In this document: piece after piece, positions 10,438 to 49,616 of the stretch
Layout of the letters: every line of letters begins with the position of its first letter
How positions within the stretch are numbered: the stretch's first letter is position 1
Assembly: GCF_023055435.1 (NCBI RefSeq)
Contig: NW_025963868.1
Coordinates: 15,438,001-15,502,000, forward strand
Direction of reading: 5' to 3'
Origin: Haliotis rufescens
Taxonomy: Eukaryota
DNA: 64,000 nucleotides
Notes under the pieces: generated by a model
Told to the model about the DNA's origin: nothing
The model's input: only the letters and a program-made list of their open reading frames with translations
Database searches by the model: none
Position numbers and translations under genes: made by a program

Positions 10438-13400
10438 ATGTCAGTTACATTTGCGGAGCAGTCATTGAAGACCTTGATCTATCTGGAAGTCACTGCACTA
10501 GCTGGTTTGAGTAAACAATATTATATTTTGATATTTATCAATATTTTATATTTATAAAAAAACCCAAACATTTGATGAATTGATACATGCTGTCAACTCA
10601 CCTTTGCAACATTGTAGAATTCTACAAAAGTAACGAATAATCATGTTGTCCAAGTTTTAAGTACCCCATGATTTCCTGCGCTGCGTCTAAAAACAGTATG
10701 TAGTAATACATAACCCAAGAAACAAAAGCTTTCAGAAAAGTCACTAGTTCGCTCGATTTAAGCTGTTGACTGTTGACAGCGTCGTCCATACTGTACGACC
10801 TCACCTCAGACCCGATGCCGGCCGTGGGAGAGAGGCCATTCAGTCTGACCTGTAGGCACAGCAGGGGCAACACCATAGCAACAGCACTCTGGTACAGGAA
10901 CTCCGTGAAGATGTTCCAAACAAGTCACCAGAATCCAACATCTGTTCTTGACAAGAACAGTGACCACGTGGAATACCTCTCAGTTGCTGAACGTATCGCT
11001 GTGGCAGCACACCTCCTTGGCCACACCCTCGTCCTAACCATCAACTCCACGCTTGATGCCGGGTCGGTGTGGACGTGCAGCAACGGCCCAGCGTTCAGCA
11101 ATGTTGTAAGGATCCAAGGACTTGGACTACTGCCTTGTAAGAAAGCAACCATTTGATTTTCGGGGCGTGAAGAGATTTGATCCTAATATATAATTAAGCC
11201 CCTGTTTTACTTAAAATAAGTTACACATGCCCTACCCTGTAGGAAACAAATAATGTGTCTTTACGGTCTATATTAAATATATTATATTAAAGTATCCAAA
11301 GAAGACACTGTGTTAATTCTATTTGGTGAAAACAATAGAGCACCTGTTTGTGATTGAGCTCCAACACATGTCTCCAACCTGCAGGGTTCAAATCATCCCT
11401 TCAGTGGTTGGACATGTAGGAAACCGTCGTACTTTATTTAATCATTCAGCAACCAATTCTTGCGGTAAGGGGCGACTATGGTTGTCGTGAGAGGCGACTA
11501 ACGGGGTCGGGTGGTAAGACTCGCTGAATTGGCTGATGCATGTCATCGTATCCCAGTTGCGGCATTAAACAAAAACAAAATAGTTTAATCATGTTTCTCA
11601 AAAATAATTTAACTGATTCATAGATTAGAAATATGTTCTTTGTACACTGTGACTGATCTTCTTTTACAAAAAATAGTAAAGTTTGATAACAGAGATTGTC
11701 AAAAAGGGTTGAAGATCCATAACATTATTAATAAAGCCGGTTATTAACATCCAAAACAAATATATTGAGATTTCAATACAGGGGCATCCTAAACCTCATA
11801 TAAACGTTGAAGGGTATAACTTGCAATCCCATTCAATGCTTGAGTCGACGCCCGGGCGATATGAATCTAGTTAGTCCCATAAAAGGGTCAATAAAGTTTC
11901 GCAATTAATCCACGGATTATTTGCGAAATAAAGTAGCAAGACTTTTACGTTTAAGTGTATGTACATGTGGATCATGCTAATTTACTACAATAAAACAAAT
12001 TAAACACAGGCGTGTATGCAAACAAGATAACATTCTGTATTTATATCTAACAAATGTATTCACTGCAAAATGTTGACAAATTCTGGGTATAAAAGACAAA
12101 TTAGCTGTGAAAATTATAGGAATGGATCAACTGCATATCAGCAAAAACCTATTTAATAACTATACTTAAAGTATAAATAAATTATTAGAATGACAGATGA
12201 TTATTAATGTTAACAGTGTGACCACACTAATTAGGATGTCTCTCCATATTTACCCAAGTACACACATCAGGTGTGATCACACCATTGTCCCCAGCAGTAG
12301 GGGTGTTAGGGAAACCTAGTAGTTACCCAGAAGACCCAGGTTCGATTCCCACAAGGATACAATGCGTGAAGCCCATTCAGCGCTGTGATATTGCTAAAAA
12401 CGGAGAAAAACCATAATCATTCATCCCCTCATAGCAATGTTTATCAAACTACACGTACTACATGCAAGTAAATATATCCCGGTACATGTAGATTTTATAA
12501 GACAAGAGACAAAATGCAAGTCGATCATAAATCAAATATCAAAAAGAATATTTAAGATAACCTTATCATGGCATTTGCAGTATTACGTCATATACCAATC
12601 AAAACAAGTTGAGGAACACCAACAAATTAAGCCCCTATCACATTTACGACTTTTATGAAGTAAAAACACATTAGTCACTAAAATTGAAGGACACAACAAA
12701 ATGACTCCCTCAACCCCCACCCTTATATTAAATAGTTCGCCCCTTAATGGTTATAATTTGTGGTCTAACAACTTATATGTAAATGTTGTTTTACGTATAT
12801 ACTTTTCATCGTGGAGAAACATATAAACATGACACAGGCCACCATCATGGTGGCCGAGAGGGGATATTGTCATGTTGTCGTTTAATCACGGCCGTAGTTT
12901 AAGGCGATAAAGCGATGTCCCCTCTCGGTCACCATAGTACACAGAAGGTAGTTCAACTTGTTAGGCTATATAGCCAGATAGCATGATAACTATCATTTTA
13001 TCAATAAATTATATGAACAATTACCATATATTATCGCTTTCTCTCGTCTCGTGTTAGCGTTTTCTACTTTGTTGCTATCGCTTTCTCGTCTTGTGTCATC
13101 GCTTTATCGACGCCATGACTGAAGGCGATAATGCAATGTTCCCTCTCGGCCACCATACTTTCTGGCTTCTATCGCTATTTCGCTCTCTCGCCTTCTCATG
13201 ATCAGTTTATCGCGTTCTCGTCTCGTGCTATCGCTTTCTCTTCTCGTGCTATTGCTTTCTCGTCTCGTGTTATCGCTTTATCGCTGTCTCGCGATGTCCC
13301 CTCCAGGCCACCATAGCAACTACCCAATAGCGAGGTGGTGGAAAGTGAATTGTTGTGTACACAGAAGGTGGATCACCTTGTAAAGGAAAGTGTTGTTATC

Positions 13401-15504
13401 GTCAACGTGATCGATACAACGGGCACAGGCAATAGTTGTTATCATCAGGTTGCGAAAGTCGTGGAGGAAAATATATTTTTACCTACCAGTCGCTTTCCTG
13501 TGTTTCCAATTAGATATGGACATGTCGTGTTTATTTATTTCTACTTCCGAAACGGGACATTTTGAAAATTGAGTTTTGTCTGGTTTCTCACAACATGTTC
13601 AATATATAGGTTTGTGTATGATGGATGGGGGCAAGAGTACGTCCACGATCTGCGCCACTCAGGGCTGACCCCGCCCATTACGCTGTGATATATCTAACCT
13701 GTATATTAACTCACTCCAGAGTCAGACGCTGGTACACATGTACAGCCGTGTCACTGACCGATGTAGACATTGAAACATTCCTACCCCAATATTCTGAAGC
13801 CTCCGTCATTTCAGATTCAGATTCCCCCATAATCTTTACACTGTCCGCCTGGACGCCAGGTGTTATCACTGTACAATTATAATAATTCATGTTTCATATT
13901 GTGTTGTAATCAATCTGTTCAGGTGAATCTACCATAACAACTCCAACTCCCCCACCGACTGCGACAACACCAGTACACTGCGCTGGCAATGTCACCCCAT
14001 GTTGTACGTAACACTTCTTGGTTTAGCTCACAGCAACGCCAAGACCATGTTAACATAACTTAGTAAAGTCTTGAACTATTTACCAAGGTAGATACAGTGA
14101 CTAGGCCATTGGGTCATTACATTCAGGTAGGGATACCAGACAGTATGGTAAAGCCCTCATACGTTTTGGTAGATAGGGAATAATAAATTTAATATGATTG
14201 TAATTAAAAAAGACATTATTTTTTTTTTATTCTTAAAATGCGATTTTATAAAACGGCCGTGTCTTCAATGACACTACAGCTTCTAAATATTTCTGTGTTG
14301 AGATGAGGTATCTGATTCGGGTAAGAGTTTCTGCATGACATCGCTCCAAGTCCAGTACCACATGAAGACACATGTTCCTGTTGGTGGTGTTTCAGATTCA
14401 ATCCTCGCCCCAGTAGCTGCTGGTGTTGGAGCTGTGCTCGTCATCGCCGTTGCTGTCAATGTCCTCATCTGGTACCGAGTGATGGGAACACACAGGCAGA
14501 AAACCAAAGGTGAATGAAATCATTGAAATGGAACTTAAATTAGTATATTAGAATTCTCCATTCAACACTGTGTGGTTTGTATGGCGTTCATCCTAACTTT
14601 AATAGGTTCTATAACATATGTCCTCAGCTAATGCACCCTCACAATACAGGTACAGTATGTCCCGACAGCGGTGGTGATTCCTGTGGTATTTACAGGTGAC
14701 TGAAGGTGATGGGGTGCAGGAGGATATTCAATCGCTCAAATGGAGTTCCTTGTTCATAATTATCAATGTCAAGCCACCACTGTTCACTAGGGCAATATAT
14801 AGATAGTTACACTAGTAGTCAAAGCCATAAATGAGTTGCTGTTGATGTTGATGAATCATGACCCTAGGAAATCGTTGTCATTAAGAACCTATTCCTATCC
14901 GAGGTATACCGAAGGGAAAAATATGAAGTCAGTGTTATTTAGAAACACAATCCTATCTGCCGTTTATGGTACGTATATTTCACTGTGTGAAGTACAATTC
15001 TGAAACACCTGTAAACACAGGGGACGGTCGGGTAGCCTAGTGGTTAAAGCTTTCGCTTGTCACGCCGAAGACCCGGGTTCGATTCCCGACATGGGTACAA
15101 TGTGTGAAGCCCATTTCATTCAGTCAGTCTAAACACAGGTCACTGACAATGTACTTCCAGATGTAGAACCAAGCACAGAAGAAAACGATTACAATTTGAC
15201 GCCTAACGGATGTAACCATGACAGCGGCATCTACACCGACCTCGTCGGCATCAGACCGGTGTCTCTCATTGAACCAATGTACAGAGACGCCATGGAGATG
15301 CACAGTGACCTTTACATCCACGCTGTCGACGACGAAGCTACCTACGAGGACACTGCAGTGCCCAGCAACCATCCCGACATGTTACAGGAAGGTGTGGCAG
15401 CGTCAGCTCATCAGGCTGAAGACTCGGTGTCGAGGCCCTGCATGTCACTGGACACAACACACACACCATCAGATACTGTTTATCGTCACACTAAAAGTGA
15501 ATGA
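10438..15504 (+). CDS. Gene A: single V-like Ig-domain membrane receptor with multi-Tyr tail (~320 aa)
   Basis: Exons: 10438-10504 leader, 10780-11136 Ig (LTC...WYR...DAGSVWTC), possibly 13815-13859, 13923-14003 T/P stalk, 14396-14509 TM, 15161-15504 tail. All introns are GT-AG, phase 1; sum is 963 nt without the optional exon. AATAAA near 15826. Confidence 0.8.
12847..13316. mobile_element. Cluster of MITEs of the atggtggccgagagggga TIR family
   Basis: TIR pair 12847-12937; further right ends near 13156 and 13316; TCGCTTTC-type internal repeats. Confidence 0.65.
15020..15129 (+). mobile_element. tRNA-derived SINE (family 2), shortened copy with TSD TAAACACAGG, in last intron of gene A
   Basis: A box tagcctagtgg and B box ggttcgattcc; TSD at 15012 and 15130. 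Confidence 0.85.
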
Positions 15505-22125: not shown

Positions 22126-23366
22126 TATACACACATTCGTACAAGTTGAATGGCAGGTTGTGTATATGCTTATGTGCACTTGGTGCATCACATCTGAAGT
22201 ACTGGGTTTGGATTTGGAAGTCATCCTCGTACTTCCAAAGGTCACAAGAACCTCCCTTCCTCAACCATCTCCACAACAGGGAATCGACGTTGGGAATTGA
22301 TGATAAGCCACAGATACCTCTCTGCAGACTCTTCTGTTATCAAGGGACAAGGCTGAAAAACCCTTCCTTGGCGTTCATACCAAGCCTCCCAAACAAATTG
22401 TCCACACCTTCAAGTTTCTCAAGTTCCACGATTAAAGGGAACAGACTCCAAGGAAAAAACCTACAGTATATGATTCAGTAATTGGTTGGGTACACATATA
22501 TAAATTTACCTGTGTAGAAACGGTAGACACGTAAGTTCAGGAATATTAGAATAGCACATACAATATGTGACAAATGATTACTACCATTGTGCTCTCTCCC
22601 ATTACTGAGATACATGTGTAAGGGACCCCATAGACAAGGTGACGAAAGCGCGTCCCCCACGACGTGGTTACATTTATCTTTGTGTAAGTGGTCCGAGGGG
22701 ATTCCTAAGTTGACACGCCAAGGTTAGCACGGGACTCGTCATGTGCAGAACTAAATTGACCTTGACATTGCGAAACTTCAACAGATTGGATTTACACCAG
22801 TGAGTAAAATTTGTCTTAAATTTTGTTTATTCAATGTAAAGTGACATAAATGTGAAAAAATATTACCATGTGAATATCCATATCGTATAAGAGGAAGAAA
22901 TCCCACGCTGCTTCAAACATATCAACGAGGAAAGTTTCACTTTTACAATTAGCATTGTGCAGTATTCATGCATTATAAACTACCGATAAAGTCAAGTACA
23001 AAGCTTAAATAGTGTCGAGATTACATGATAATTGCGCATTGTACATTGGAGGAGTTAAATCTAGCAGCGTTCTCAACTGGACGGTTGTAGTATGCCTGTC
23101 TGGCCGCTTCGATGCCGCTATAACTGAGGGTAAGGTGTTTTTGTTTCACGCTGCACTCAGCAATACCGAAGCGTCATGAGGACGGTCTGTAAATAATCCA
23201 GTGTGGACCCGACAATCCAATGATTAAAATGATGAACAACAATTCCCGCCGTGGGGTACGATGACACGCAGTGAACTTGCATCAGATTATCAAATGTAAT
23301 AACTAGCATAGAGCATATTTGTATCTTTCGAATATTTTCTTTTGCAATAACAGACAGGTCTTGAGG

Positions 23367-26300
23367 ATGGGATGGACGTCGGCGAGGCGTCGTTGGGTCT
23401 CTGCTCTCTGTCTTCACCTTCTGGTCGTTCATGGTTTGTATAGTGCGTTACATCCCAGTAAACAAAACGTACACTTCACCATACATTATTTCCGAAGTTT
23501 GCTATGTGCACTTAGCCAATAACAAGAAGCAAATAAGATAATAATATTTCTGATTTTACTATGCGAAAACATGATATATAATGAACTGGGTAGATCCGAG
23601 ATGCGGAAAATAAAAGTCGGTTCATAGCTCACTTCATCGGAAGCCAAAAAGCATCATAGTCGACAATTGTTTTTTGTAAAAGATGCTTTTTGAATATTTA
23701 AGCTGCTGCCAATTAATCTGAGTCAGTGTAAATTGTTATAAGGGTCAATGGCGGACCGCCGATCTCTAACAGCAGAACACGGCCTATCAATAGATTCAAG
23801 AAATACATGGTTTTATCTTAATGTTGCATGCTCTTAGAACTTGTCGCTTCATGGCCTTGGTAGAATTACTGGTGAATAAGTAGCATACTTCTAAGGCGTA
23901 GGCGCTTCCACATACCATGTGATCTGACTCGTATATTGAGAATTCATCTCACTGAGGTTTTGAATGAATATATGCTGTGTTAATTCTACACTTGCAATCG
24001 GCCAAATATGTGTGGGTAACATGAAACTTTTAGTTACATTATGTTACAGACTACAGATGCTACAGTATGTAGGATCAGCCATGTCATATAATATATAGAT
24101 ATATGATTTATGTATTTAATTTCCTTCACATAAACTGATTTAATGGAAAGCACATACGTTGTGATATGTTGCTTATATATCACACTAGACAGTACTTACA
24201 GTATTCAAGTAATATGTCATTGTACAGACAAATAGCTACACACATCTTTCATTTATTTCACACAGCATCTTCGTTGAAGTACCACCTTACATCTACACCA
24301 GCTATAGAAGGGCAGCCATTTACTCTGTCGTGTAGACAAGATCATACCATAGGAACTGCATTGTGGTACAGGAACTGGGTCCGGATTTTTCAAACAAATA
24401 GGAATTACCAGTTTGAGATGCTTGAAAAGAACACTGATCACGAGGAGTTCCGGTCTGTGTCAGGACGTATCTCTGTGCATGCAACTCTGATCCGACACAA
24501 CGTGATCCTCACCATCAACTCTACACTGGATGAGGGATCTGTGTGGAGGTGTGGTCTAGGGGAGGATTCTAGTGATAACCTGACAGTAAGGGTGGTCAAG
24601 CCAGTCACTGGTATGTAATTCGTTGCGGGAGACCAAGTAAATGTGTATGTCACTAGTATTATTTCACTGACAAAATCAATGTCTCCAACAAATCGCGATT
24701 TCAATAATTTCAGACACTTAATACGGGATCTATGTGGAGTGTAGGGGAGTATGATATCATCAACCTGACATTAACGGTAACTGATTCCACACGTGGTACG
24801 ACATTCACTTTTTATAAGGTATCACATGCAGCAGACTCAACATACATGCCAGAGGGTTACTCATACCCTCTTACTTAAGTCCACGTAAACCTGAAACTAT
24901 ACTGACTAATTAAGTAATCATCTTGATGTACTATGTCATGTGCATGTGTGGACATCTTGATCGTATTACTCCAAAACATTACAATACATTGATTGCTCCT
25001 CTAGATGCTAAACACGCATTCCACAGTTCTGCATTAAATGACGACCTAATTACTGGGTAGGGGTCGATATACAAAATATCCAAATCTTAAACCCAATACA
25101 ATACTTAATACAATCATAATGGCTAGTTTATTCTTCTCTGTAAGCCCGGCGGGCGTCAGAGCTGGTTCAGCCTTAGTGTAGTGGCACCAGAAGACTACTT
25201 GACAGAGCATGATGCTATACCTACATTCATGGATTTCCCGGTCTGGCGCTCGGCATTGAGGGGATAAAACAAGGACTGGTCGGCTCGGTGTCAGTTTTCT
25301 GTGTCTGAGTGGGGTATTCATGTTAAACTGCGGCCTGGTATCTCAGTGGGCTAGCACTATAACATCGGCATTAATGCGGACTTGTAGATTCAGCCACACA
25401 CACACATGCATGCACGTAAGTGCAATATTCTTGAACGCGACTTTAAACCCCATTTCACCTCACATCACCTCACCTCAACTCGTACATTCATAAGCGAGAT
25501 ACCCTTGCTTGTTTAATGATAATACTCATAAAATCAACTGTCCATATTTTAAAAAATTTGCATTTTATAATGTTCACATATTTCGTGACTACTATAGTTC
25601 GACACACCTTAAAAGCGTGTAATGACAAGAAAGGAAATAGAAAGTATAATTCTTGTGATTAACTAGAAAAACAAAATTAACATGAAAATTGCAGGAAATG
25701 GAAAGAAATGCTGATCACAGATAAAAGTTGCAATTGGATGCTTGTTTCCTGTTGAGGCACAGAATCGATCAGCAACACGGGCGTTTAGTACACAAGTATC
25801 ACACTTGTTAACCTCAGTATATCCCTGTGAAATAAGGATCATGTGTTATATCGATAACAATGTTTACCTTTTAGAAATATATAAATACTGTTTAATGTAG
25901 CTATGTCCCCACTTCACTCTCACTCACTCACTCACTCACTCACTCACTGTTCAGGTGAATCCACCACCAGAACTCCGACTGCCCTTCCAACTGCGACAAC
26001 ACCAGTACAGTGCGCTCGCGATGACACCTTTTGTAGTAAGTAGCGCTTTCTGATTTTAGTTCATATCAGTGACAGCATCACCAAGACCTAGTTAACATGA
26101 TTCACACTAGTTCAAGACTTGAACTACTTTCCACGTTAGATAACGTAACTGGACCGTGTTAGGTCATAACATTCCCCGACAAAGATGATATAGCAATCGG
26201 ATATTTTGTTAGGTACATATTGGAGAATAAATTTAAAATTGTTGAATATATAAAAGAAATCTGTTTCAACGCCTTTATTTATAAATCGGCCGTGCCTTCA

Positions 26301-28562
26301 ATGGTACTACAGCTTCAAAAAACCACTAACACAAATCCTAGTTCTATGTTGCATCTGATTTAAGTTAATATTCATTTCTGCATGACATCGCTTCTAGTCA
26401 AGTACACCATTGAGACAATTTGTTACAGTGGGTTTATTTTCAGAACCAGTCCTCGTCCCAGTAGCTGCTGGTGTTGGAGCGACACTCGTCATCGCCGTTG
26501 CTGTCAATGTTCTGATCTGGTACCGAGTGATCGCAACAAGGAAGCAAAAAACCAAAGGTGAATGAAATCATTCAAATTGAAACTATATACTCCCCAAACA
26601 ATAAAGGGGTATTACAAAATAACAGAATAACACAGAAATACAGAGAGGTGTCGAGTTGTGGTAATATGTGGGTAAGAAAAGGAAGGGCTAGGTGTAACAT
26701 GACAATCAATAGAACACGTTGGAGATGTATTGTAAGGGTGTAAATAACTAAGCAATACGACACAAGTGTCAAAATAATTAATATTTGAGGTGACTTGACA
26801 AAAAATGGGTGACACGATTGTTCAAACATTCGTTTATACCACGAAGCATGGTCCGAATCAATCTCCCAATGACAATTTGGGGGTGTCTTTCCATTCCTCT
26901 TATAGCGTCTGGACCAGTTCGGCTGATGAAGCGAGAGGCCTCTAACGTCGGCGTACACGTCTCCAAATCATGCTTTATAGGGAATGCTCAGGACTCTTAA
27001 TTAGTTTGCTGCTGGAGGTAGTCAGTCAAGGTGGGCACGAACGTTGTCGTACTGAAAGACAAAACGTGGATCAGCATTGCGCGGAAACCAGTGTCGCCAG
27101 CATGTTGTCTCGGTAGTTCGGTCCAGTGATCCTTCTGTGGAAGTGCAGTGGCGCTCCGACAGTCACAGTGATCCCGCCCCTTATCATTTCAGACCCAACC
27201 CCAACTCTGTCGTGTTGCCTGACGTTGACGTTCGCATGGCGCTCGTTACGACACCTCCTAGACACGTCCACGATTTTCCAGAAGGTCCAGAGTGAATCTG
27301 GAAACATTATACGAAACTATCGGATACACCCCGAGTTTCTACGCCCATTGGCGTCTGGAGAGAATGTGTCGATTCGTTGACGGTGGTACATGACGTAATG
27401 GTCGAGCATGCAGAGTAGCTGCATGCAGATGAATTCTTGTTGTTTGGTTATTAACTTGCCTTCTGGTGGCATGGCGCAACCGAACAGACATTTGATTGGC
27501 TGTTTAGGCTCGATTTCTGATTAATCTATCCTTGACTTGTGTTGTTGAGCTTGGGCGAAATGTGCGGTGCCTATCATTAAAACTGTGTGTCTGCAGAAAC
27601 CTGTTCCAAAGTCTGTTAAGGACAGACTGAGACACATCGAACGCACTGACTACCTCTCGCCGAGTTCTACCAGTTTGAAGCATGCCCATATCCCGTTATT
27701 GTTCGTCACGTTGTAGGCGATGCATTCCCAATCTGATAACAAATACTACAGTAGATGAAGAGAAGTATACGTGTTACTGGGGATAATGAAACTCATGACC
27801 AATGGCTCAGAGCGATTTGACGACCTTCTACTGAAGTGTCAAACTCAATAATGTCCCCTAACCCATGAGCATGGATGCATTGCAGGGTCCAGGAACAACG
27901 TTTCGGGTGTGTTGGGGCGTTTGGTTTGGTTCACTGGCTGTCATTTTCCAAAGCTGATCTTTCTTCTGAAGACCGATGGAAAATATATCATACATGATCC
28001 CCTACTCATTTTAGAGAGTGTTAATACTAAGTGGTTTGTACGTCTTCCATCCTGATGTTAATATGTTCTCTACGTCACAATATGTGTACAATACGTTTCG
28101 ACACTGAAGGGAATTCTGCCTGACATATTAAGAGAGGGTGGTCAGTCATGGTGCGTGTCATCATTATTCCATGGCGTGGCCCTGCTCATGCCTTTAGTCA
28201 CTAGTAAGTTATGTGCGTATGTTTACGAGTTGCTCAGACTTTCATCATTGAACAACGACCCCTCAATCAATCCACGCATACCTCTCGGTGCCAACTCTCG
28301 GTGAAACAAATCCTAATAAATGACACTTTCAGATAAAAAAGCCAGCACAGTAGAAAACAACGAGTACAACTTGACGACCTATGGCGATCATCATGACAGC
28401 GGTGACTACTCCGACCTCGCCAGCATCAGGCCAGTGTCTCTCATAGAGCCGATATACAGAGACGCCATGGAGATGCACAGTGACATCTACATCAACGCTG
28501 TCGACGACGAAGCTACCTATGAGAGTCCTGTGTGGGTCCGGGACCATCCCGATATATCCTAA
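23367..28562 (+). CDS. Gene B: single V-like Ig-domain membrane receptor with multi-Tyr tail (278 aa)
   Basis: Exons: 23367-23433 (MGWTSARRRWVSALCLHLLVVH), 24266-24610 Ig, 25955-26035 stalk, 26444-26557 TM, 28333-28562 tail; 837 nt, open frame. Leader, stalk and TM exon sizes (67/81/114) equal those of gene A. AATAAA near 29092. Confidence 0.85.
25140..25480 (+). mobile_element. SINE family 3 with conserved central domain (Meta-domain-like); second copy at ~47410-47730
   Basis: Both copies share ggcgctcggcatt...aacaaggactggtcggctcgg...tgtctg...gttaaactgcggc.tggtatctcagtggg. Confidence 0.65.
25912..25948. repeat. (CACT)n microsatellite abutting the acceptor of the gene B stalk exon
   Basis: Read directly. 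Confidence 0.95.
26750..27730 (-). pseudogene. Decayed Tc1-like transposase in last intron of gene B
   Basis: GMLQTGRTRREVVSAFDVSQSVLNRLWNRFLQT...RPSSTT HTH region plus degenerate DDE segments. Confidence 0.75.
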
Positions 28563-29299
28563 TGTTGCAGTCAGGCGTGGTCGCCAATCATTAAAGTGTC
28601 ATCGATGCTTATGAAATTGGTTACAGCTTGCTGTCCTTATTAAGTAACTTCGATTTGTATAAAATAAGTTAGCTGAGTGTGCAGGTCGCGCCACGTTGAT
28701 CATGGGAATCGGTCTGATAATAATTGTTTTGTCAGCACCATACCCGAGCTGTTGGGGGCTTCACACAAGAGGTGAAAGTCATCAACCCCCACATCAAACT
28801 GAGACCGTGGTATACATGTTGTGGAAATTCTGTCCGAGGCAACGTTAAATTCTGTTCACTAACTGTATCAAAAAAGCAAGATGTCACAGACGTTACTGGA
28901 ATAAGTCAAGTAGTGTTAAATATATTAGTTTTGTTTTCCGTACTGACGTTATGCAACAACATTACGTGTATTTGTTGGAGATGGTGTGGGTGATCATTTT
29001 GGGTTACCTGATAATAGGTAATAGTCTAATTGGTTTGACATACGCTTTAATACAGTAACTGAAAAATAGATAATTGAAAATGGTTATATGAAATAAAGAG
29101 GATAGATTGCTCGTTCGATTTTTTGCTTCCTTATGATGACAGGACTTGTAAAGAATGATTATTTTGAATAAAACATTTTGCATTTATGAATTAATTGTGT
29201 GGTACCAAGAGCATTTATCTGTCTGTCTGTCTGTCCGTCCGTCCGTCTGTCTATCTGTCTATCTATCTAATATATATATATACAGAGTCAAGATTTTCG

Positions 29300-32862: not shown

Positions 32863-32984
32863 TTTCAAGATCTCAAGATGTTTAATAACCACTGCTTGAG
32901 TTCAAAACTCAACTTAGTACGAACTTGTGCATGAGCATGAATTTGAGCATGAAACTGAGTTGATTTGTTTATAGCCTCGGGGCC

Positions 32985-33375: not shown

Positions 33376-34984
33376 GTTGTGAGACGTGAGTGCAGTTTAT
33401 ATTTATGTATCTTAACTTGAGATAAGGTTCAGTACCTGATAAGTTTATAGATCAAATCTACCCTACTTCATGTTTGATCAGGCATCTAGCTTGCAATTTT
33501 GTTGAGGACAAACTATGTGCCCTATGATGGATATTTTCGGACACACCCATGTCCTCTAGTGATCCAAACTTATTAGGCAATTTGATTTGGTGAGGAGTAT
33601 CCGTTTTCACCCATGTCAAGTCTCTTTGGCAGTTTATTGACAAAGTGGATATTAGCGAAGAGCTTAATTTCAGCGCAGTGGTCAGAGGGTGTCCTAGTGA
33701 CGGATGCGTAAGTTTCATTTGGCTCTTGGGTTTGGACAAGTGTTTTTGCAGCAGCAACACTGATGTCCTTGTGAACTTAATTATGTAAATGTTCCTTGTT
33801 GTTTCCAGAAGATATGTGATTTCCTGAACAGGCCCCCGGTACATGAGTATTTTCTCTGCAATGTCGTGTAGATCGATGCTCATGATGGCATTTACTGAAT
33901 TGTCTTTCCAGACTTGATATTTTTACAGACCGCCGTCATACAGCTGGAAAATTGCTGATTGCGGCGGCGTTAAACAAAGAAATAAAGAAACAAATAATCA
34001 CTGCACTGAACAAATGAAATAGATTTTGTGCAAATATTCACACCATGGACGTATATTTGGCATTTGAAACATCTCAGAGGGGTCTCATATAAGGGGTGCA
34101 TACATTTGTTATGGTGAAAACATCACCAACGACGTGACCAACAACATTAAAAGGCACACCACTGGTATGACACATAACAATACAAATGATACGACTGAAT
34201 CTGATTTTTGATTCACCTGTAAACATATAACAATTTGTTTCAGGAATTATGGTTACCTTACTGAGATTTCAAGGCATGAGGTTTCACTGTGCAATATTTA
34301 TTGTATGACATAAATTGATATTTTGAAAACGATATTACCCCGTAAATATGCACATCGTATATGAGGAAGTAGATACCGCTCCCTCAAACATATCAGCAAG
34401 GAAAGTTTCACACGTGTGCAGTATTCATGAATGATAATACTTATAATAAGGTCATGTACGGAATTATATTTGTTGACATTATATACAAATTGCACACTTT
34501 ACATTGGTGGAGTTCAATAACATCGCGTTCTCGACTGCATGATTGTCGCAGGTCTTGCCACTTCGATGCACCAACAACGCAAGGTAAGGAATGTTTTGTT
34601 TAACGCTGCACTGAGTAATATTGAAGCTATATGTATATAATTTAGTATGGACCAGACAATACTGTGAATGATATAACGAACAAGGATTCATGCCGTGGGA
34701 TACGATGACAGCAAACAGATCAATTTACCGAGTCAGACCACCCGTTCCTTGGTGCCTGTTGAAAGTAAAACTATTTCTGCTTCCAGGGCACGAATGGCAC
34801 AGTCGTCTAATTAAGGTATCGCAATTCGCTGTACAGAGCTGCGTCGTTTGGACATGCCAGACACATGTACCTATAATCGTGGGATGGAATCCCGGCTCGC
34901 CCTGATAATGTGTCTTGGTCTTTAAGCACCATATCCGTGCTCGTTGGTTTCACCAAAGTGGTAAAGGTGTGCACCATTTCGGGC

Positions 34985-35660
34985 TTTCCTCCTTCCGTGA
35001 TATCACTGCAATACTTTCCTCCTTCCCTGATATCACTGCAATACTTTCCTCCTTCCCTGATATCACTGGAATACTTTCCTCCTTCCCTGATATCACTGGA
35101 ATACTTTCCTCCTTCCCTGATATCACTGGAATACTTTCCTCCTTCCGTGATATCCCTTCAATACTTTCCTCCTTCCGTGATATCACTTCAATACTTTCCT
35201 CTTTCCGTGATATCACTTCAATATTTTCCTCTCACGCCGTGATATCACTGAAAGACTCGTCCTTCCGTGATATCACTGCAATACTTTCCTCCTTCCGTGA
35301 TATCACTGCAATACTTTCCCCCCTCCGTGATATCACTTCAATACTTTCCTCCTTCCGTGATATCACTTCAATACTTTCCTCCTTCCGTGATATCACTGCA
35401 ATACTTTCCTCTCACGCCGTGATCTCGTTGGAAAACTTTCCTCCCACGCCGTGATATTACTGGATACTTTCCTTCCACGCCGTGATGTCACTGGAATACT
35501 TTAATTCCCTCCTTCCGTGATATCACTGGAATACTTTCCTCCCACGCCTTGATATCACTGGAATACTTTCCTTTCACGCCGTGATGTCACTGGAATTTTT
35601 TCCTCCTTCCGTGATATCACTGGAATACTTTCCTCCCGCGCCGTGATATCACTGGACTAC
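34985..35660. repeat. 30-bp minisatellite (TTTCCTCCTTCCGTGATATCACTGCAATAC) inside a SINE-like element
   Basis: Tandem units followed by ...gcgtcgttaaacccaactcactcact tail. Confidence 0.9.
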
Positions 35661-36153
35661 TGTCCAAAGCGTCGTTAAACCCAACTCACTCACTGGCTCA
35701 CCCCAAGTAGAATCGTTGCATATGCTGTCAAACACTGGTCTGCCTTTATTTACACACACACCCCTCCTTCTTGACACAGCTGTTATATTGCTGGATACGG
35801 AGTAAAAAAAATTTCATTCTTTCAAATAACAATAAAATAGATTGTCCTCCTGTAAACAAATCAATGTTATTGCAACATTCTTGTCCAAAAGAAAACCATG
35901 ATATATCTGTTGCAACAGATTTTATTTGTAAACATGTCACAAACATGAGTATGAGCACGTGCTTGCGTGCGTGCGTGCGTGCGTGTGTGTGTGTTTGTTG
36001 ACACGCACCCGTATCTTGGTTTTTTAATGTTTAATGTTTATACACCCGAAGAAATCACTTCCACTATATTATCAAATGTAATAACTATTAGAGAGCGTAT
36101 TTGAATCTTTCGAAGTCTTCGCATATTTTCTTTTGTAATAACAGGTCTTGAGG

Positions 36154-39100
36154 ATGGGGTGGACGTCGGTGAGGCGTCGTTGGGTCTCTGCTCTCTGTCT
36201 TTGCCTTCTGGTAGTTCATGGTTTGTATAGTGCGTTACATAAGGTAGTTGCTTTTCATTGTGTTAATGTCTGGTTTTGTTTTCTCTACAGTGTTATTTCT
36301 CATTTTACTCTGAGATAACATCATGTACAACCACGGGGTAGATCCGTGATGTGTAAAATTGTCGCTTTATGAACTTGGTAGAATTTCTGGTGAAAAGGTT
36401 ACAAACTCGTAAGGCGTGGTGGCCTCCATGTACCTTATGATCTCACCTTGTATATTGGAAATTCATGTCACACAGGTTTCGCAAGACCTGTGTTAATTCT
36501 ATACTTGTAATCAGTCAAATTCTGTTCACTGTGCACATGCATTAAAAGATAATATCATATGTATTGGTAACATGAACATTTTAGTTACATTACATTGCAG
36601 CGTAATACTTGCTACAGTATGTAGAAATCAGTCATATCATATAATATATACATATATGATTAATGGATTATATTTTCTGCACTTACACTTATTTATTGGA
36701 CAGTGAGTGAGTGATTGAATATTTATAGTCACATCGGCAATTTTTCAGCCATATCGTGACTAAATCAAGTTAGTTTTATTGGACAGAACATACGTTGTGA
36801 TATGTTGCTTTATATCATACTAGACAGAACTTACAGTATTCAAGCAATATGTTATTGTACAGACAAATAGCTACACACATCTTTCATTTATTTCACACAG
36901 CATCTTCGTTGAAGTACCGCCTTACATCTACACCAGCTATAGAAGGGGAGCCATGTACTCTATCGTGTAGACACGATCACACCATAGGAACTGCACTGTG
37001 GTACAGGAACCTGGTCCGGATTTTTCAAACAAATAGGAATTTCCCACTTGAGATGCTTGACAGGAACACTGATCACGAGGAGTTCCGGTCTGTGTCAGGA
37101 CGTATCTCTGTGGATGCAACCCCGATCCGACACAACGTGATCCTCACCATCAACTCTACACTGGATGAGGGATCTGTGTGGAGGTGTGGTCTAGAGGAGG
37201 ATTGTAGTAATAACCTGACAGTAAGGGTGGTCAAGCCAGTCACTGGTATGTAATTCGTTGCGGGAGACACAGTAAATGTCATTAATATGTCACTATTATT
37301 ATTTCACTGAAACAATCCATGTCAGAAACAAATCGCGATTGCCACAAATTCAAACACTGGATAAGACATCTATGTGGACCTGGCGCGTAGGGGAGTATCA
37401 TTGTAGCAACAATAACAGTAACTGAATCCACCATTCACAAAATGAATGGGAGATGTGGTTCTGACTCGGATGTTGGTGAATTTACGTACGTAGATCATAA
37501 TGGGACCAGTGTCATTGATTATGTTATATGTTGACCACAATCTTTTCATTGCTGTACTGATTTTACTATTACACCAAGAGCTGAATCATCGCATCTACCT
37601 GTCACTGTCAGCCTACAATCAGCAGATGTCACATGTCCTAGACATTTAGGTGACACACCTAGTAATACAGGTGATTGTTCAAGTTTGTGTGGGATTATGA
37701 TAAGAACGAGCAATTTCAAGATGCTTTTTTACTCTGATAGTGTACACGAATTACTTCACAGATCAATGGAAGTGGCACTCTTCTAGGATTATTCTCTCAC
37801 AGTTTCGCACGTCGAGCAGTGATCTTATGGTATCACAGGGTAGAAAGTTAGGTATTCCAAAGTGTGAAAGACTTTGTCCATTTTGTATCATTCCAAGTGT
37901 AGAAACAGAATACCATGTTTGTTTAGTTTGTCCGTTTTATGACGATCTTAGAAGAAACTTTCTGCCAAGTTATTATTATACATCTCCATCAGAGCATAAA
38001 TGTAAGGTTTTATTTACCACCAGTAATGCTTTCACAATCAATAATCTTGCCAAGTTTACATTTTTTGCTCTTAAAATGAGGAGCAAGCAGTTGTCCATTA
38101 TATAAACTACTAATTCTACCACCATATGTATATGGTCTCAGATACCCTTGTACGGATTAGTATTGATATTACTACATGCACTTGTGGCGCAACATGTTTG
38201 AATGCTTGAATATATATATTGTAAAATGGGCCTGTGGCCTGATTTACTGAAATAAACCACTACTACTAATGGGAGTGGCACTAACTGATATTAATGAGAG
38301 TGTGCAATGTTTGGTTGAAGGATTGTGTTAGTCATATATGTGTATGAGAAGGAAAGTTAGTCGAAGTATTACAGATAAGAAATGGTTTGATATTGAGTGT
38401 GAATTCCTCACAAAGAAAAGATGTAGGTGCTTTAATATACATAGAAAAAATAAAGATGCAGAATCCTTATCAATTTACAACCAGGTTAGAAATAAGTATA
38501 ATAGTACATGCAGAAGTAAAAAAGGCAATACAAGGCGAGACAGCGAGAAAAACTAGAAAGTAGCATAAAGTATCCAGAAACGTTCTGGTCTACTCTCAAA
38601 CACTCGGATGGTAAGAGACAGGTTTATAAAAATGACATAAACATAGATACCTGGAATATACATTTGAGAGACTTATTTTCTTTTGACAATAACAGTGAAG
38701 ATTTGCAGGAAGACATCGAAATAAACAGTGAATAGGCTAGTTTAGTAGCTGACATATTATATTTTCCTATTTCAAGAGAAGAAATCACTTCAAATATACA
38801 AAGATTGAAAAAAGAAAAGTCTCCTGATATTGACAACGTAATACCCGAGTTTTTTAAGAATTCATCAGATATAATTGTCTCATATTTAGAAGTGTTGTAT
38901 AATGCTATTTTTGAACATTCCAATTTCCCAAAGATTGGTCAGTGGGCATTATCATTCCTTTTCACAAACAAAGGTAATGTAAATGATACCAATAGCTACA
39001 GAGGCATCACATTATTAAGCATACTGAGTAAAATATTCTTAGATATCATTAATAGAAGATTAGTATTTTGGGCTGAATCATTTAAGAAAATAGATGAGAC

Positions 39101-42100
39101 ACAAGCTGGTTTTAGAGAGGGGTACTCAACTATAGACAACAGTTTTGTGTTACATTCCTTAATTCAACGTTATTTATCAAGTAAATGGGGGAAAAACGGA
39201 TGCGTTTTTTGAAGGTTTTTCTAAAGCATTTGACTCAGTTAACCGTGATAAACTTTGGGCCTTGCTTAAATTACAAAGAGTAAGCAGCAAGATGTTGAAA
39301 CTGTTATCAAGTATCTATGAACAAGTAAAGGCTTCTGTAAGAAGTAATGGCAAGTACTCAGAAGATTTTGAATGCAATGTAGGCGTTCGACAAGGATGTA
39401 TATTAAGTCCTTTTCTCTTTACTTTCTGGGGCGGTCGGGTAGCCTAGTGGTTAAAGCGTTGGCTCGTCACGCCGAAGACCCGGGTTCGATTCCCGACATG
39501 GGTACAATGTGTGAAGCCCATTTCTGGTGTCCCCCGCCGTGATATTGCTGGAATATTGCTAAAAGCGGCGTAAAACCATACTCACTCACTCACTCACTCT
39601 CTACTTTCTTTATTAACGTGCTGGCAGAAGAAAAACAAAAAACAGCTACACCCAGATAGTGTTAAAATATTTTTGCTTCTGTTTCCCGATGATGTCGTAA
39701 TGATTCCGAGTACTGTACCCAGATAGTGTTCGACAAGGATGTATATTAAGTCCTTTTCTCTTTACGTTCTTTATTAACGTGCTGGCAGAAGAAAAACAAA
39801 AAACAGCTACACCCAGATAGTGTTAAAATATTTTTGCTTCTGTTTCCCGATGATGTCGTAATGATTCCGAGTACTGTACCCAGATAGTGTTCGACAAGGA
39901 TGTATATTAAGTCCTTTTCTCTTTACGTTCTTTATTAACGTGCTGGCAGAAGAAAAACAAAAAACAGCTACACCCAGATAGTGTTAAAATATTTTTGCTT
40001 CTGTTTCCCGATGATGTCGTAATGATTCCGAGTACTGTACCCGGACTTCAAAGTCAGATAAATGTGCTGGAGCAATTTTGTGAACAATTTGGTTTAAGTG
40101 TTAACACAAAAAAAGAACAAAGTTATTGTGTTAAAAAACGGCGGTATGTTATCAAAAAGGGAGAAATGGTTTTACAAAGAAAGTTACAAGTTATAAATAT
40201 TTGGGAGTACATTTTTCTATAAAATTATCTTGGAATTTCCATTCAATACAGGCTGCAACGCAAGCAAAGAATAGTCTTTATAGGGTACAAAAACGTCTCA
40301 GATCTATTGAGAGTATAAATTTTAATCTATTTTAAATTTTTTTACACAAAATAAAGCCAATTCTACTATATGGGGCTGAGGTTGGGGTGTACATCAGCTA
40401 GATTTGAATGAAAGGGTGCATGTATATGCATGCAAAAGGTATTTAGGAGTGAAGATAAACACCCCCAATGTAGTATTGGTTAAGGTTATTAAGGTTGCCA
40501 TATGATAGATACCCAAGAAAGTGTTATGAAATGATGGTATTGTATGACAAAAATGGAAAGCAAAACTGGGTTCCGTCGGTTAAAAAGCTCAGTGATGATT
40601 TAGGCTCAGGTTATGCTTGGCAAAGTCAAAATTTAGATTGTCCTGAACATTTTGTTAAATTGTGTACACAAAGGCTCTAAGATACGTACATACAAAAGTG
40701 GAATTGTTTGTTAGCTTTAACGTCAAAATGTCAGTACTTGAGTTTATTTAAAACACAGTTTATAACTGCAGAATATCTTTTTAAAACCACTCTTGTACAA
40801 ATATAGAATTGCATTTTCTAGATTCAGATGCTCATAACATGAATTAAATATGGAAACGGGAAGATATTCCAAAATCCCAAAAGGAATTAGATTATGTAAA
40901 ATGTGTAATCTACAGCTAATAGAGGAATCAAAAGTCAAGAATCAAGAATTTTTATTGTACAGAACACCCTCGTAGGGCAGGGTACAAACTATCTACATTT
41001 GGGAATAAATATAACTATAAACATGAAAGGTAGATATACATAATGTACATTATAGATGAGTACCATTTTGTTCTCTTTTGTCCATTTTATCAGAATTTAC
41101 GAATTATATACCTACACCCATCAATGTACTAATTTCCAAATATATTTAAGTTTAATGAATGATATCTTCTACAAGTATCAATGTTCTGAAGCCTTTGACT
41201 GCGTATATATTCCATGCGATGGATTGTAGAAATGACAAGATGAGTGACTTAAATAAGTAGAAATCAATATGTCCATCCACTATCCACAAAGACACGTACT
41301 ATAGGCCTATGGCCTTTTAGTATTTCTGTAAGAAAGATTGATTGAAAGATTGATTGAACAAAGAACCAAATCGTTTGCCATAGACTTCTGTTGTAACGTT
41401 ATATTTTATCTTAATAATAGGGTACTCAACAACCATGTCATGTGCATGTGTGAATATCGTGATCTTATTACTGCATTGCATTACAATGCATTCTGCATTA
41501 AATGGCGCTTACTTGAAATTATATGCGGACACAATAGCTTCACTGATGATTCAAAGAGAATACAGGACAGGGATATTGACAACATCTTGGTCAGCTTTAA
41601 TTACTGGTGGGGGTAGATATATAAAACATCCAAATATTTGATTGAGAAATATCTCGAATCCGGAAAAAGAATCAGAGTGCCGGACGTAACAATATTATGA
41701 TAGATATATGTTTCTCTATACTGACCTATAGTTCCGTCAACAAAACTCCGAAACCCAGATCACTGGTCACAGTTGTAATTTGATGCATGAGATTCTGTTG
41801 AAGTACACAATTGATCAATACAAAATATCACACTTGTTATCCTTAATATTTTCCTGTGCGTTAAGGGCCATGCAATATTTCGACAGTAAACGTATATGAC
41901 TTTTGAGAAATACATGACTATTTAACTACGAAGTCCAAAAAGAAACTAATAATAATTCACAAGAATAAAATACTCACGCTGCTGGGGATGTACGTTGAAT
42001 GAACGGCTTCATTAACACATTCAGGTGCACAACAGATAGATGTGTATCATGTTTTAGTGTTTTAGTGTTTTTCATGGAAGTATTAACAAGGGATAAACAA

Positions 42101-43302
42101 TACATTAGTTGTATCGTTAACTCTTAGCAATATATTTTTACCACAGTGTTTTGCTTCATATAAGGTTCATCGACCGGCAGCCCAGGGACTAGTGGCAACT
42201 ATAATGATGTCATGGCTGAAGGTAATCGTTGTTGAATGTTTATAAATTTGTATTGATAGTTTTATACAGTAAATAAAGTCACAAAGATCGTTGACCACCT
42301 TAGCAAAGCATCATAGTTTAGCTTGTTGATGCTATATTTGGTTCAGCAAACAGTTCTGTACGCAAAGTATGACATACTGTAAAGCAAGCAGTAGCCTAAC
42401 GTACATCTAGAGACACTGCGGCTTGTTTCAGATTCATCCCTACCTCCTCTTGCCACGGCTTCTCTAGGGGGAGCACTGCTGGTCATAATCACTCTCACTG
42501 CACTGATCTGGAGCTGCGTGGTAGGACAACGTAAGTCGGAAAGTCAAGGTAATGAACGATCTCAACACCTCAACATATGCACCTAAATATGGTCTGTGGG
42601 TGCATATAATCGTACTCCAAAGTTGTAACTTGTCTGGTCCAATCTCTATGACGTATGAAGCGTTGTAGTGGCATATAACTGCCATTGACGCTAAATACAA
42701 TTGGCCCACTCCCCCGAGGCAGAAGAAACAACCAATATCAAACATGTGCACATAAATGGCACGTATCAAATGATTAGAGCTCAGTATTTCCAGATTTGAA
42801 TTAGGTACACTATGCCTGAAATGGGTTGAAAAGAGCATCTTTCATATCATTGTCCTTTGAGGCTGTAGACCTGTCATTTGAAATAAACTGACGATATTTT
42901 CCTAATGTTTTCCTATATTGTTTATCTAATTATTGATTATTGAGGAGTCTGTCTAAGCAACTTGATCATATTTATTTTACAGCTGCTTTGCCTTCTCGGG
43001 ACGACATGACAATCAGGACTCCGAGGACACAGACATTGTCACTGATACCAGAATCTCAAATGCAGACACTGAACCTGGAAGCTTATGATTTAACTGAGAG
43101 TTTTCAGCCAGAAACACAGTACAGTCAGGTCAAGAAGTCAGCCAGGAGCAGTCAAGATCACCCACAACCAATATACAGCGTGGCTTGTAAGCCGATAAAG
43201 CCCACATGGGGGCAGTATCCAGGAGATGCAGGTCCTCAGCCCTGTAACTTAAAGGTGCCAGCAGTTAAGAAGATGGTTGACGAGCAGGGATCGATAATCT
43301 AA
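36154..43302 (+). CDS. Gene C: single V-like Ig-domain membrane receptor with ITSM-like tail (301 aa)
   Basis: Exons: 36154-36220 leader, 36901-37245 Ig, 42165-42221 (GSSTGSPGTSGNYNDVMAE), 42432-42548 TM (LATASLGGALLVIITLTALIWSCVV), 42983-43302 tail with TQYSQV and PIYSVA; 906 nt, open frame, all phase 1. Confidence 0.78.
36703..36775 (-). mobile_element. Very short 5'-truncated retroposon with (ACTC)n tail and TSD TTATTGGACAG; relatives at 44783-44840 (TSD CCTTACTTAAGA) and 45960-46020
   Basis: gagtgagtg...acatcggcaat...cagccatatcgtgac; absent from the homologous intron of gene B. Confidence 0.75.
37430..41330 (+). mobile_element. Decayed LINE ORF2 (CR1/L2-like) in intron 2 of gene C, with a nested LINE 3' end at ~37760-38268
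   Basis: RT motifs SYRGITLLS, QAGFREGYSTIDN, GVRQGCILSPFLF, LLFPDD; C-terminal CPFC...ETEYH zinc motif; many stops and frameshifts. Confidence 0.9.
39428..39598 (+). mobile_element. tRNA-derived SINE (family 2), full length, inserted in a LINE RT region
   Basis: A and B boxes, (ACTC)n tail, TSD including TACTTTCT. Confidence 0.92.
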
Positions 43303-47274: not shown

Positions 47275-49616
47275 ATGGATATATACAAGCTCTCAGTCAT
47301 ATCTTTGGTCATAATGAGGACAATTGAAGGTAAGTTGCATGGGTGGAAATTCTTTACTTATTTCCTGGATTTCTACTTTGAGGAGAGTTGACCTATTTCA
47401 TAGAACAGACGGTCTCCGTGTTCTCGAGTACAGAGCATCTAAGAGAGTGGAAGGTAAGTGGTTCGATCGCCTGGCCGCGTCATACCCAAAGACGTCGAAA
47501 GATGGTACTTGTTACCTTGCCAGGCGCTCGGCATTAAGGGGCTAAAACAAGGACTGGTCGGCTCGGAGTCAGTATATCGTGTCTGGGCGGAGTCCAAGTT
47601 AAACTGCGGCATGGTATCTCAGTGGGTTCGCATTACAAAACAGACATTAGTCCAGGACCAGTACAAGCAGTGACGCAGCCACGCACGCACACGCACACAC
47701 ATGTTCGTCGCTTTAAACGTCAAACCCAATTTATCTTTGCTGTAGAGGAAACTGATTATGAGTTTATATCGCGAGTCAATTGTTACAGTTATCAAGCATA
47801 GAACAATAGGTACACATGCCTTTTGTGTTTTTCGCACAGCATCTTCGTTGAAGTACCGCCTTAAATCTACACAAGCTATAGAAGGGCAACCGTGTACTTT
47901 ATCGTGTAGACACGATCACACCATAGGAACTGCATTGTGGTACAGGAACTGGGTCCGGATTTTTCAAACAAATAGGAATTACCAGTTTGAGATGCTTGAC
48001 AAGAACATTGATCACGAGGAGTTCCGGTCTGTGTCAGGACGGATCTCTGTGGATGCAACCCTGATCCGACACAACGTGATCCTCACCATCAACTCTACAC
48101 TGGATGAGGGATCTGTGTGGAGGTGTGGTCTAGGGGAGGATTCTAGTAATAATCTGACAGTAAGGGTGGTCAAGCCAGTCACTGGTATGTAATTCGTCGC
48201 GGAAGACCAAGTAAATGTTATATATATAACACAAGTATTATTGTACTAAAACAATCCATGTCTGAAACATATAATATCACGATTTCCGAAATCCCAATAA
48301 ATGTACTGCTGGTGAATACCGAATGTATTTCATGAATTACTTAATAAGGTCAAATCGGTGGGTTCTTTATGTAGATGTGGTCAGGTTTGGTAAAGTTTGG
48401 TCTAGTTTTAATGCCTACAGTTCACGCTCTTGTCAATATACTTACAAGATACTTTTATATCTTCAGTTTGTCCTTATAACATTATGGTTCTTGTCACAGA
48501 CGGGAGTACAACCACCCAACCCCAGACAACATCCATCGTTAGCAAGACAACTACAACTACAGAAGCTATGACAGAAAACAAAGGTTTGTTAAAGTTTTCC
48601 CGAGATTCAAGTATTTATGGCCAAACGTGCAAAGAAGCGTTTAAAAGCCAGTCTAGTTTTAATATTCTTCCTTTCAATTGTCATGTTTATGTTATGGCGT
48701 TGACACACAGGGCGCCTGGGTACATTGGAATATTGTGTACATATACAAGTGTATATATGAGTTACTGTGGCACGTACGACATGATGACATAACAGTGTAC
48801 ATTATGTGTTATTGCATTACAAATGACACTGTATATCAATCTTTTTTAAGTGAAAAAATATGGAACTAAATTGCACATATAAGTTTTATACAGATCAAAA
48901 ATCATATTTCATCTTCAACACACACCCCTCTATTATTTATTCTTTTGTCGCAGAATATCCGGCAACCCATGCCTTTATCCTAACCATGTGTGGAACTGCC
49001 TGTTGTCTCACCCTTGTCATAGGCAGCACCATAATCTTGTTTGCGAGGAGTCGCCTCACAGCTGGACCCGGTAAAAGACTTCACAGTATATATGATGAAA
49101 TATACTTGACAATGCAATAGATTATGTTACTTAAATGATCGAGAAGAGTTCGTTTCCGGTAACAGACATAACAATCAATTCTTTTATAAACTAAAGTTTT
49201 CGCTTGGGAGGACGTGGGTTGGGCAGTGAGTGAGTGGGTCATCAAATTGCGCAGAACAAAGAAATATTCAACTGTTGAAAAACAATAGTCATCGTTTAAC
49301 ATGTACATCTGCGCCATATGTACGAATTCAGAAAAGTGAAACATTTTTTAAAATGATACATTTACATTCCGCTTTGTCCCGTTCATAGTTTTGGTGATTT
49401 TGACAGCTTTTGACTGCAGGGAACTGTAAAATATTATCTGTTTACAAGCTGTCTGATGATACAAGTTGGTAACGTACGATTCATAATGTCCAACTCTGAG
49501 ATCGGACGTAGTGTTTTAGCTTTTAAAGCCTAAGTACACTGACAATTATTTGATCTGTTGCAGATGATAAAACCACAGCAGGATCTCAAGCAAGACCACA
49601 GCAGGCCAGACAGTGA
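47275..49616 (+). CDS. Gene D: single V-like Ig-domain membrane protein with short Tyr-free tail (217 aa)
   Basis: Exons: 47275-47329 (MDIYKLSVISLVIMRTIE, donor gtaagt), 47840-48184 Ig, 48500-48583 Thr-rich stalk, 48954-49070 TM (AFILTMCGTACCLTLVIGSTIILFA), 49564-49616 (DDKTTAGSQARPQQARQ*); 654 nt, open frame. Confidence 0.75.

Follow-up and report, generated by a model that had tools for sequence, protein, structure and literature searches.

Tandem single-immunoglobulin genes of the red abalone with a shared sensor exon and different tails: a candidate paired-receptor-like cluster

Organization of the locus

In a window of 64,000 nucleotides from the genome of the red abalone Haliotis rufescens (contig NW_025963868.1; "the window" always refers to this whole stretch) we could delineate four genes, A to D, which encode candidate receptors with one immunoglobulin (Ig) domain each. 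Self-comparison of the window reveals four related stretches on the plus strand near 10.8, 24.3, 36.9, and 47.9 kb. By an exact splice-aware search the genes match, residue for residue, four RefSeq proteins of H. rufescens, all of them named "uncharacterized", with canonical GT-AG introns that are all in phase 1 (Table 1). The genes have a common exon plan of leader, Ig exon, stalk (57–84 nt), transmembrane exon (114 or 117 nt), and tail exon, and gene C has one additional 5′ exon compared with the others. In B, C, and D the Ig exon is open over 345 nt, follows an AG acceptor, and ends at a GTATGT donor, with phase 1 on both sides; the Ig exon of A has 357 nt and is also symmetric (phase 1-1). 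The models support the view that the tandem cluster encodes four separate type I membrane proteins with one Ig domain each. An earlier reading of this DNA from the letters alone (the sequence-only reading) had supposed a probable mollusc as source, had assigned a 345-nt V-like Ig exon to B, C, and D, and had set the limits at the ATG of A (10438) and at the end of the stop codon of D (49616), in full agreement with the species and with the gene models.

Table 1. Genes of the cluster and tracts shared between them (positions in the window)
Feature	Position (strand)	Gene and protein	Exons or content	Basis
Gene A	10438..15504 (+)	LOC124119230, P0011, 320 aa	leader 10438-10504; Ig 10780-11136; stalk 13923-14003; transmembrane 14396-14509; Tyr-rich tail 15161-15504	exact protein mapping
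Gene B	23353..28972 (+)	LOC124119247, P0052, 278 aa	leader 23353-23433 (ATG 23367); Ig 24266-24610; stalk 25955-26035; transmembrane 26444-26557; tail 28333-28562; 3′ untranslated region (UTR) reaching at least about 28972	exact protein mapping and exon-only contigs
Gene C	34539..43302 (+)	LOC124119244, P0003, 319 aa	5′ exon 34539-34583; leader 36145-36220; Ig 36901-37245; stalk 42165-42221; transmembrane 42432-42548; tail 42983-43302	exact protein mapping
Gene D	47275..49616 (+)	LOC125381486, P0051, 217 aa	leader 47275-47329; Ig 47840-48184; Thr-rich stalk 48500-48583; transmembrane 48954-49070; short Tyr-free tail 49564-49616	exact protein mapping
3′ half of B	25947..29216 (+)		collinear with A 13915-15955 via exons, introns, and 3′ UTR	blastn blocks of 70%, 81%, and 68%
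5′ half of B	22826..24800 (+)		collinear with C 34297-37431: upstream exon region, leader, intron 1, Ig exon	blastn blocks of 70-89%
B–C high-identity (conversion-like) tract	B 24150..24700 (+); C about 36785-37335
D tract shared with B and C	47805..48272 (+)		Ig exon with flanks of 35 nt (upstream) and 88 nt (downstream)	blastn 90% over 468 nt

Transcription of gene B

Contigs from four public runs, which carry no tissue label, were aligned to the gene B region (23300–29215; 5,916 letters). Apart from repeats, three of the four runs cover exons only. Record 1 of run X1, which has the same species label, joins the leader (23353–23432) to the Ig exon (24265–24610) with zero mismatches; its match ends precisely at the Ig donor 24610, and 57 more letters follow in the contig. 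Record 18 of run X2, from the same species, joins the stalk (25956–26035) to the transmembrane exon (26444–26557), and record 27 of run X5, from another species, joins stalk, transmembrane exon, and tail. Three of the four coding junctions are therefore seen in contigs (leader–Ig, stalk–transmembrane, and transmembrane–tail), and at the fourth one, Ig to stalk, a match ends at the donor. In the coding exons covered, X1 and X2 do not differ from the B reference. Run X15, from a related species, is DNA-like: every bin of the region is covered at ∼3–4% divergence, including the intron sequence past 24800 which is unique to B. As the exon-only contigs are joined and the DNA-like run covers the region, gene B is a transcribed single-Ig gene which is present in a related species too. 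The sequence-only reading had proposed to compare its predicted junctions with transcripts, and this comparison, carried out on B, confirmed the three junctions named above.

Intron 2 of gene B contains a very high-copy repeat (25240–25470). Summed over contigs, the depth at this repeat is tens of thousands in the RNA-like runs and rises to ∼2.35 million in the DNA-like one, and joints and loose ends are numerous. The repeat is probably a SINE-like (short interspersed nuclear element) sequence that is transcribed too.

Identity of the sensor domain

The Ig domain does not reach the gathering score of the Pfam V-set family (PF07686; best 16.7 bits against a cut-off of 26), and the full-length proteins A to D have no Pfam match at E ≤ 0.01. 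A family profile constructed from 26 Ig exons of this genome matches antibody single domains (VHH) and Fc-gamma receptor domains in PDB with E values down to 3e-7. In these 26 exons Cys22 of strand B, Trp33 of strand C, and Cys95 of strand F are invariant and D88 is nearly so. The AlphaFold model of the domain has a predicted local distance difference test score (pLDDT) of 93.6 and nine or more strands; its top Foldseek matches are VHH, T-cell receptor V-beta, and antibody light-chain variable (VL) domains with a probability of 1.0 and TM-scores of 0.56–0.67. Structure prediction and profile search, both suggested in the sequence-only reading, thus bear out the V-like Ig fold, and the model supports placing the sensor domain with the V-set-like Ig domains despite the Pfam miss. 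In a protein atlas the domain adjoins mollusc hypothetical proteins and V-set clusters, an observation which serves as a lead only.

Shared and unshared modules

The Ig domains of B, C, and D are 87–92% identical and differ at 15 (B/C), 9 (B/D), and 12 (C/D) residues, the very counts given before; at the nucleotide level the exons differ at 21, 17, and 20 positions, respectively. The synonymous divergence (dS) of these exons is 0.07–0.11 and the ratio of nonsynonymous to synonymous divergence (dN/dS) is 0.33–0.88. Within the genome the Ig exons match each other with E values of 1e-61 to 1e-66, far past chance. The Ig exon of A has only ∼48% protein identity to the B/C/D type.

The relations of the other modules were assessed by local alignment scores in comparison to 500 shuffles. 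Stalk, transmembrane exon, and tail of A and B align with scores of 81, 147, and 252, which were reached by none of the shuffles. The transmembrane exon of C is also akin to that of A and B (score 57–58, z about 9, 0/500 shuffles), and the transmembrane exon of D is unrelated to them. Stalk and tail are related between A and B and unrelated in C and D, and the leader is related between B and C and unrelated in A and D. Accordingly, B, C, and D comprise two leader types, one of them shared by B and C, and three stalk/transmembrane/tail types. When the C tail, the A tail, and the D transmembrane exon were compared with the whole genome, only self-matches were found, plus B in case of the A tail; there is accordingly no detectable larger family that could have donated the tails.

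The sequence-only reading had described the genes as a paired-receptor-like set, and the architecture, that is clustered genes with near-identical ectodomains and differing transmembrane and cytoplasmic parts, agrees with this description. It was also right in regarding the tail of B as homologous to that of A and the Ig domain of A as much more divergent. Its wording of three unrelated signalling modules holds for the tails and stalks and for the transmembrane exon of D, and is too strong for C because the transmembrane exon of C is related to that of A and B.

Copying of the Ig exon between genes

Between A and B, dS is ∼2.0 in the Ig exon (saturated) versus 0.40 in stalk, transmembrane exon, and tail taken together, and thus we rejected the explanation that B is a duplicate of A as a whole gene. 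The 3′ half of B is collinear with A and the 5′ half is collinear with C (Table 1); past ∼24800 the identity of B and C is at random level. As the modules differ in age, the genes are mosaics formed by recombination.

On the side of B, the high-identity tract shared with C begins 116 nt before the end of intron 1, runs through the Ig exon, and extends 90 nt into intron 2. Identity is 95.7% at the end of intron 1, 93.9% in the exon, and 88.9% at the start of intron 2, and then drops to 77% and further to random level. The distal intron sequence of both genes is 69–79% identical (78.9% in the Fisher contrast), and the intron flanks alone differ from it significantly (Fisher P = 2.5e-5). Since the intron flanks of the two genes match as closely as the exon does, protein selection fails as an explanation, whereas conversion over ∼550 nt can explain the pattern. 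In the comparison of D with B and C the exon is 94–95% identical and the flanks 74% (35 nt) and 82% (88 nt); the sequences beyond are unrelated and at random level. Thus, the Ig exon together with ∼100 nt of intron on each side has been copied between the paralogues more recently than the remainder of the genes.

The family in Haliotis

With the Ig exon of B as query, phmmer returned 50 proteins from a target of 1.84 billion representatives. Sixteen of these were looked up, and every one is a RefSeq model from Haliotis; almost all bear the name "uncharacterized", and two models of H. asinina are called "mucin-22-like". Among the 16 matches looked up the family is thus detectable in Haliotis only, and an independent origin is therefore plausible. 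The genome of H. rufescens contains at least 75 related Ig exons in several clusters, which are overlooked by standard domain annotation, and the tails of the wider family are a mix of long Tyr-rich and short ones.

The present cluster runs on past gene D. A further member lies at 15517542–15518582 of the contig, ∼16 kb past the end of the window, and has two Ig exons, the second of which is 54–62% identical to that of B depending on the alignment.

Cross-species tests were based on predicted proteins of H. cracherodii and H. rubra. The orthologue of D in H. cracherodii (P0001) is 92% identical, and the D module is intact in both H. rufescens and H. cracherodii. The D-type proteins of H. rufescens and H. 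cracherodii differ at 11 of 114 residues in the Ig domain versus 5 of 85 elsewhere. In H. rubra, protein P0053 combines a D-type leader with an A/B-type 3′ part, and P0004 a B/C-type leader with a different 3′ part. The Ig domains of these two proteins are 94% identical overall, are the same except for the last few residues, and have states specific for H. rubra. In the Ig tree they form a pair with 99/97 support, and clades defined by leader type, and likewise those defined by tail type, are rejected by the approximately unbiased (AU) test (P < 1e-7). These predicted proteins show concerted evolution of the Ig exon, which in H. rubra is species-specific across differing leaders and 3′ parts.

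At the N-terminus both H. rubra proteins have two to four tandem 11-residue repeats (YN[LI]TSTP...) before the Ig domain. These repeats, which are not present in H. rufescens, add N-glycosylation sequons and seemingly arose from the beginning of the Ig exon.

Cytoplasmic tails

Five tyrosines are conserved among A, B, and the H. rubra protein P0053, including those in SGxY[ST]D[LI] and YI[NH]AVD. The transmembrane segments of the A/B type have a conserved Asn. The motif TQYSQV, which the sequence-only reading had noticed in the tail of C, is found at 43114 in the last exon of C, and the cytoplasmic part of D is indeed short and devoid of Tyr (26 residues).

YxN motifs (YVN, YYN, YEN, YIN) are recurrent in many of the cytoplasmic tails of the family proteins P0006–P0053. 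They are seemingly commoner than predicted by the frequency of Asn, which hints at possible docking of Grb2-type SH2 domains.

Interpretation

We suggest, with a probability of roughly 0.6, that the locus is a tandem cluster of small V-like single-Ig receptors with a shared, copied sensor and different outputs, akin in build and mode of evolution to vertebrate paired receptors such as Siglec-11/16, CEACAM, and SIRP. We infer that the proteins B, C, and D see the same or overlapping ligands and relay the contact differently. The five conserved tyrosines (YxxL/I and YxN) would transmit the signal of B and also that of A, whose sensor differs. C would signal via a different Tyr tail with one site resembling an immunoreceptor tyrosine-based switch motif (ITSM). 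D would give no cytoplasmic signal and might be a competitor or might signal via a membrane partner.

Paired receptors have been defined in general terms (PMC3533184), and gene conversion keeps paired receptors such as Siglec-11 and Siglec-16 alike (PMC5701461) and is also described for CEACAM1, CEACAM3, and decoys (PMC2832619, PMC5112662). Like in these vertebrate systems, the abalone genes are clustered and code for very similar Ig ectodomains with different transmembrane and cytoplasmic parts, the putative ligand-binding exon is homogenised among the paralogues with conversion-like tracts that include intron flanks, and a short-tailed member lies beside members with Tyr motifs. In contrast to the vertebrate receptors, they have no detectable sequence homology to them, the tails lack a canonical inhibitory or activation motif, and the short-tailed member D has no charged transmembrane residue. 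The abalone receptors have a single Ig domain per protein, and the likeness is one of architecture and evolution as read from sequence.

Several points weigh against our suggestion. Motif counts were compared with shuffles for six motifs. An immunoreceptor tyrosine-based inhibitory motif of canonical form (ITIM; [SIVL]xYxx[IVL]) was not found in the cytoplasmic parts of A to D, and the activation motif (ITAM) was not found in any of their tails. The ITSM-like motif TxYxxV of C occurs once, with a shuffle P of about 0.035, uncorrected, among the six motifs tried. The motif DSGxYxxL of A and B was rejected as canonical hemITAM, because two of its three acidic positions lack an acidic residue (definition in PMC12582321). 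The transmembrane segment of D is rich in small and polar residues; its hydrophobic core is free of K, R, D, and E and thus offers no charge for the recruitment of an adaptor. Given tails without canonical ITIM or ITAM and an uncharged transmembrane segment in D, the labels inhibitory, activating, and decoy of the sequence-only reading are unsupported, and "same sensor, different outputs" stands as what remains of the proposed signalling. With regard to the copying, the contrast between exon and flanks in D rests on few sites, and the dS of the Ig exons is above the ∼3–4% divergence from the DNA of the related species; the homogenisation is therefore not very recent. Moreover, the clades in the AU test were named after the tree had already been seen, the H. 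rubra evidence consists of two predicted proteins, of which P0004 is probably truncated, and the junctions of C and D are those of the RefSeq models only.

It is possible, but in our opinion rather unlikely, that the genes form an ordinary fast-evolving tandem family with no coordinated paired function. Each gene would then have a role of its own, for example, in adhesion or as co-receptor, the chimeras would be a by-product of recombination, D would perhaps be a neutral recombinant, and the Ig domains would be alike by descent and purifying selection. Such a family would be consistent with the many related Ig exons of the genome, where long Tyr-rich and short tails are mixed so that tail variety is the norm, with the failure to find canonical opposing motifs in the tails of A to D, and with the dN/dS of the Ig exons, which fits mild constraint. 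Nevertheless, descent with purifying selection does not account for the intron flanks of B and C, which are as alike as the exon and far above the distal intron. In addition, the Ig domain common to two H. rubra proteins is species-specific although their leaders and 3′ parts differ, which requires sequence exchange among genes, and the D module has remained intact in two species.

That the locus serves allorecognition or gamete recognition, with a polymorphic Ig domain as determinant, appears improbable to us. The Ig domain of the D-type proteins changes fast between the close species H. rufescens and H. cracherodii, and the Hydractinia Alr and Botryllus FF/FcoR genes are taxon-restricted clusters of the Ig superfamily (IgSF) with exon shuffling and Tyr-motif tails. 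On the contrary, abalone are solitary animals and do not fuse, D changes nearly as quickly outside its Ig domain as within it, and the identity of runs X1 and X2 to the B reference gives no hint of polymorphism of allorecognition grade. That the Ig copies of B, C, and D are assembly duplicates, as the sequence-only reading had considered, or that the gene models are wrong, is largely refuted and hardly conceivable: although the window has two N runs and many repeats, the copies have 17–21 exon differences and unrelated flanks, the junctions of B are seen in independent runs of two species, all of B is covered by DNA of the related species, and related genes are found in H. cracherodii and H. 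rubra.

The proposal of a shared sensor with different outputs can be extended, although this extension is doubtful, to an independent lophotrochozoan paired-receptor system. In such a system a V-type sensor kept alike by conversion would be connected to two Tyr-tail outputs and to a signal-less competitor and would tune responses of haemocytes or epithelia to one ligand, possibly that of a pathogen; other clusters of the Haliotis family would be alike.

Among invertebrates, the Alr proteins of Hydractinia bear a number of extracellular domains, among them an Fn3-like fold, and several of the proteins possess true ITAMs or ITIMs (10.1101/2022.03.04.482883 / PMC9546547). The abalone genes resemble them as a taxon-restricted cluster of single-pass IgSF proteins with unusual V-set-like sequence, with exons shuffled among neighbouring genes, and with Tyr-motif tails of various kinds; the Alr proteins, however, govern allorecognition in a colonial animal. 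Homology of the abalone genes to the Alr or to the Botryllus FF/FcoR families was not found among the 16 phmmer matches looked up, from a library whose content of cnidarian and tunicate proteins is uncertain. Fester and FcoR of Botryllus constitute a ligand-receptor/co-receptor system of two families at a polymorphic histocompatibility locus, with ITIM and hemITAM motifs of canonical form (PMC12582321). Here the similarity lies in IgSF diversification by intergenic recombination, in swaps of Tyr-motif tails, and in YxxI/L/V cores without the full canonical context, whereas in abalone a single family bears both sensor and tail. In oysters, CgIgIT2 has an ITAM (as reviewed in PMC11999971) and a homologue of NCAM1 has two ITIMs and acts through SHIP2 (PMC11841013). 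Like the abalone proteins these are type I IgSF proteins of a mollusc with tyrosine-based tails, and the downstream machinery therefore exists in molluscs. The oyster receptors have three to five Ig domains and were studied gene by gene; a cluster with a shared sensor or concerted evolution is not described for them. In the literature we found no cluster with a shared sensor and different tails described for a mollusc and no report naming the present loci.

Clusters with a shared sensor kept by conversion and with different tails are a signature of innate immune regulation in vertebrates and of arms races between host and pathogen, and comparable taxon-restricted IgSF clusters are already known from one cnidarian and one tunicate. 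If our suggestion is true, the abalone cluster would be a lophotrochozoan case of convergent evolution of the paired-receptor design and would provide immune research on this farmed and endangered group of animals with four intact candidate genes whose exons are defined.

Repeats and mobile elements in the window

Intron 2 of gene C (4.9 kb) contains decayed reverse-transcriptase fragments in three frames (38736–40219; best E value 5.6e-8 with Pfam RVT_1), and inside this retrotransposon a tandem duplication of 161 nt (39597–40042). The insertion of the presumptive retrotransposon accounts for much of the intron. Between the 5′ exon and the leader exon of C lies a 30-nt tandem repeat with ∼22 copies (34984–35665).

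A 78-nt minisatellite with 39 copies and 97% matches (16056–19097) begins ∼550 nt past the stop codon of gene A; it is open over more than 1000 codons in two frames, for which no protein or family match was seen. A 23-nt satellite with ∼47 copies and 94% matches occupies positions 3004–4076. Upstream of gene B an inverted repeat pair of 205 nt (21299–21503 and 21928–22132; 95.6% identical, ∼425 nt apart) has the look of a miniature inverted-repeat transposable element (MITE). Another inverted repeat pair of 238 nt is found at 55310–55545 and 61861–62098 (96% identical), and the ∼6.8 kb between these two repeats contain several long open frames on the minus strand.

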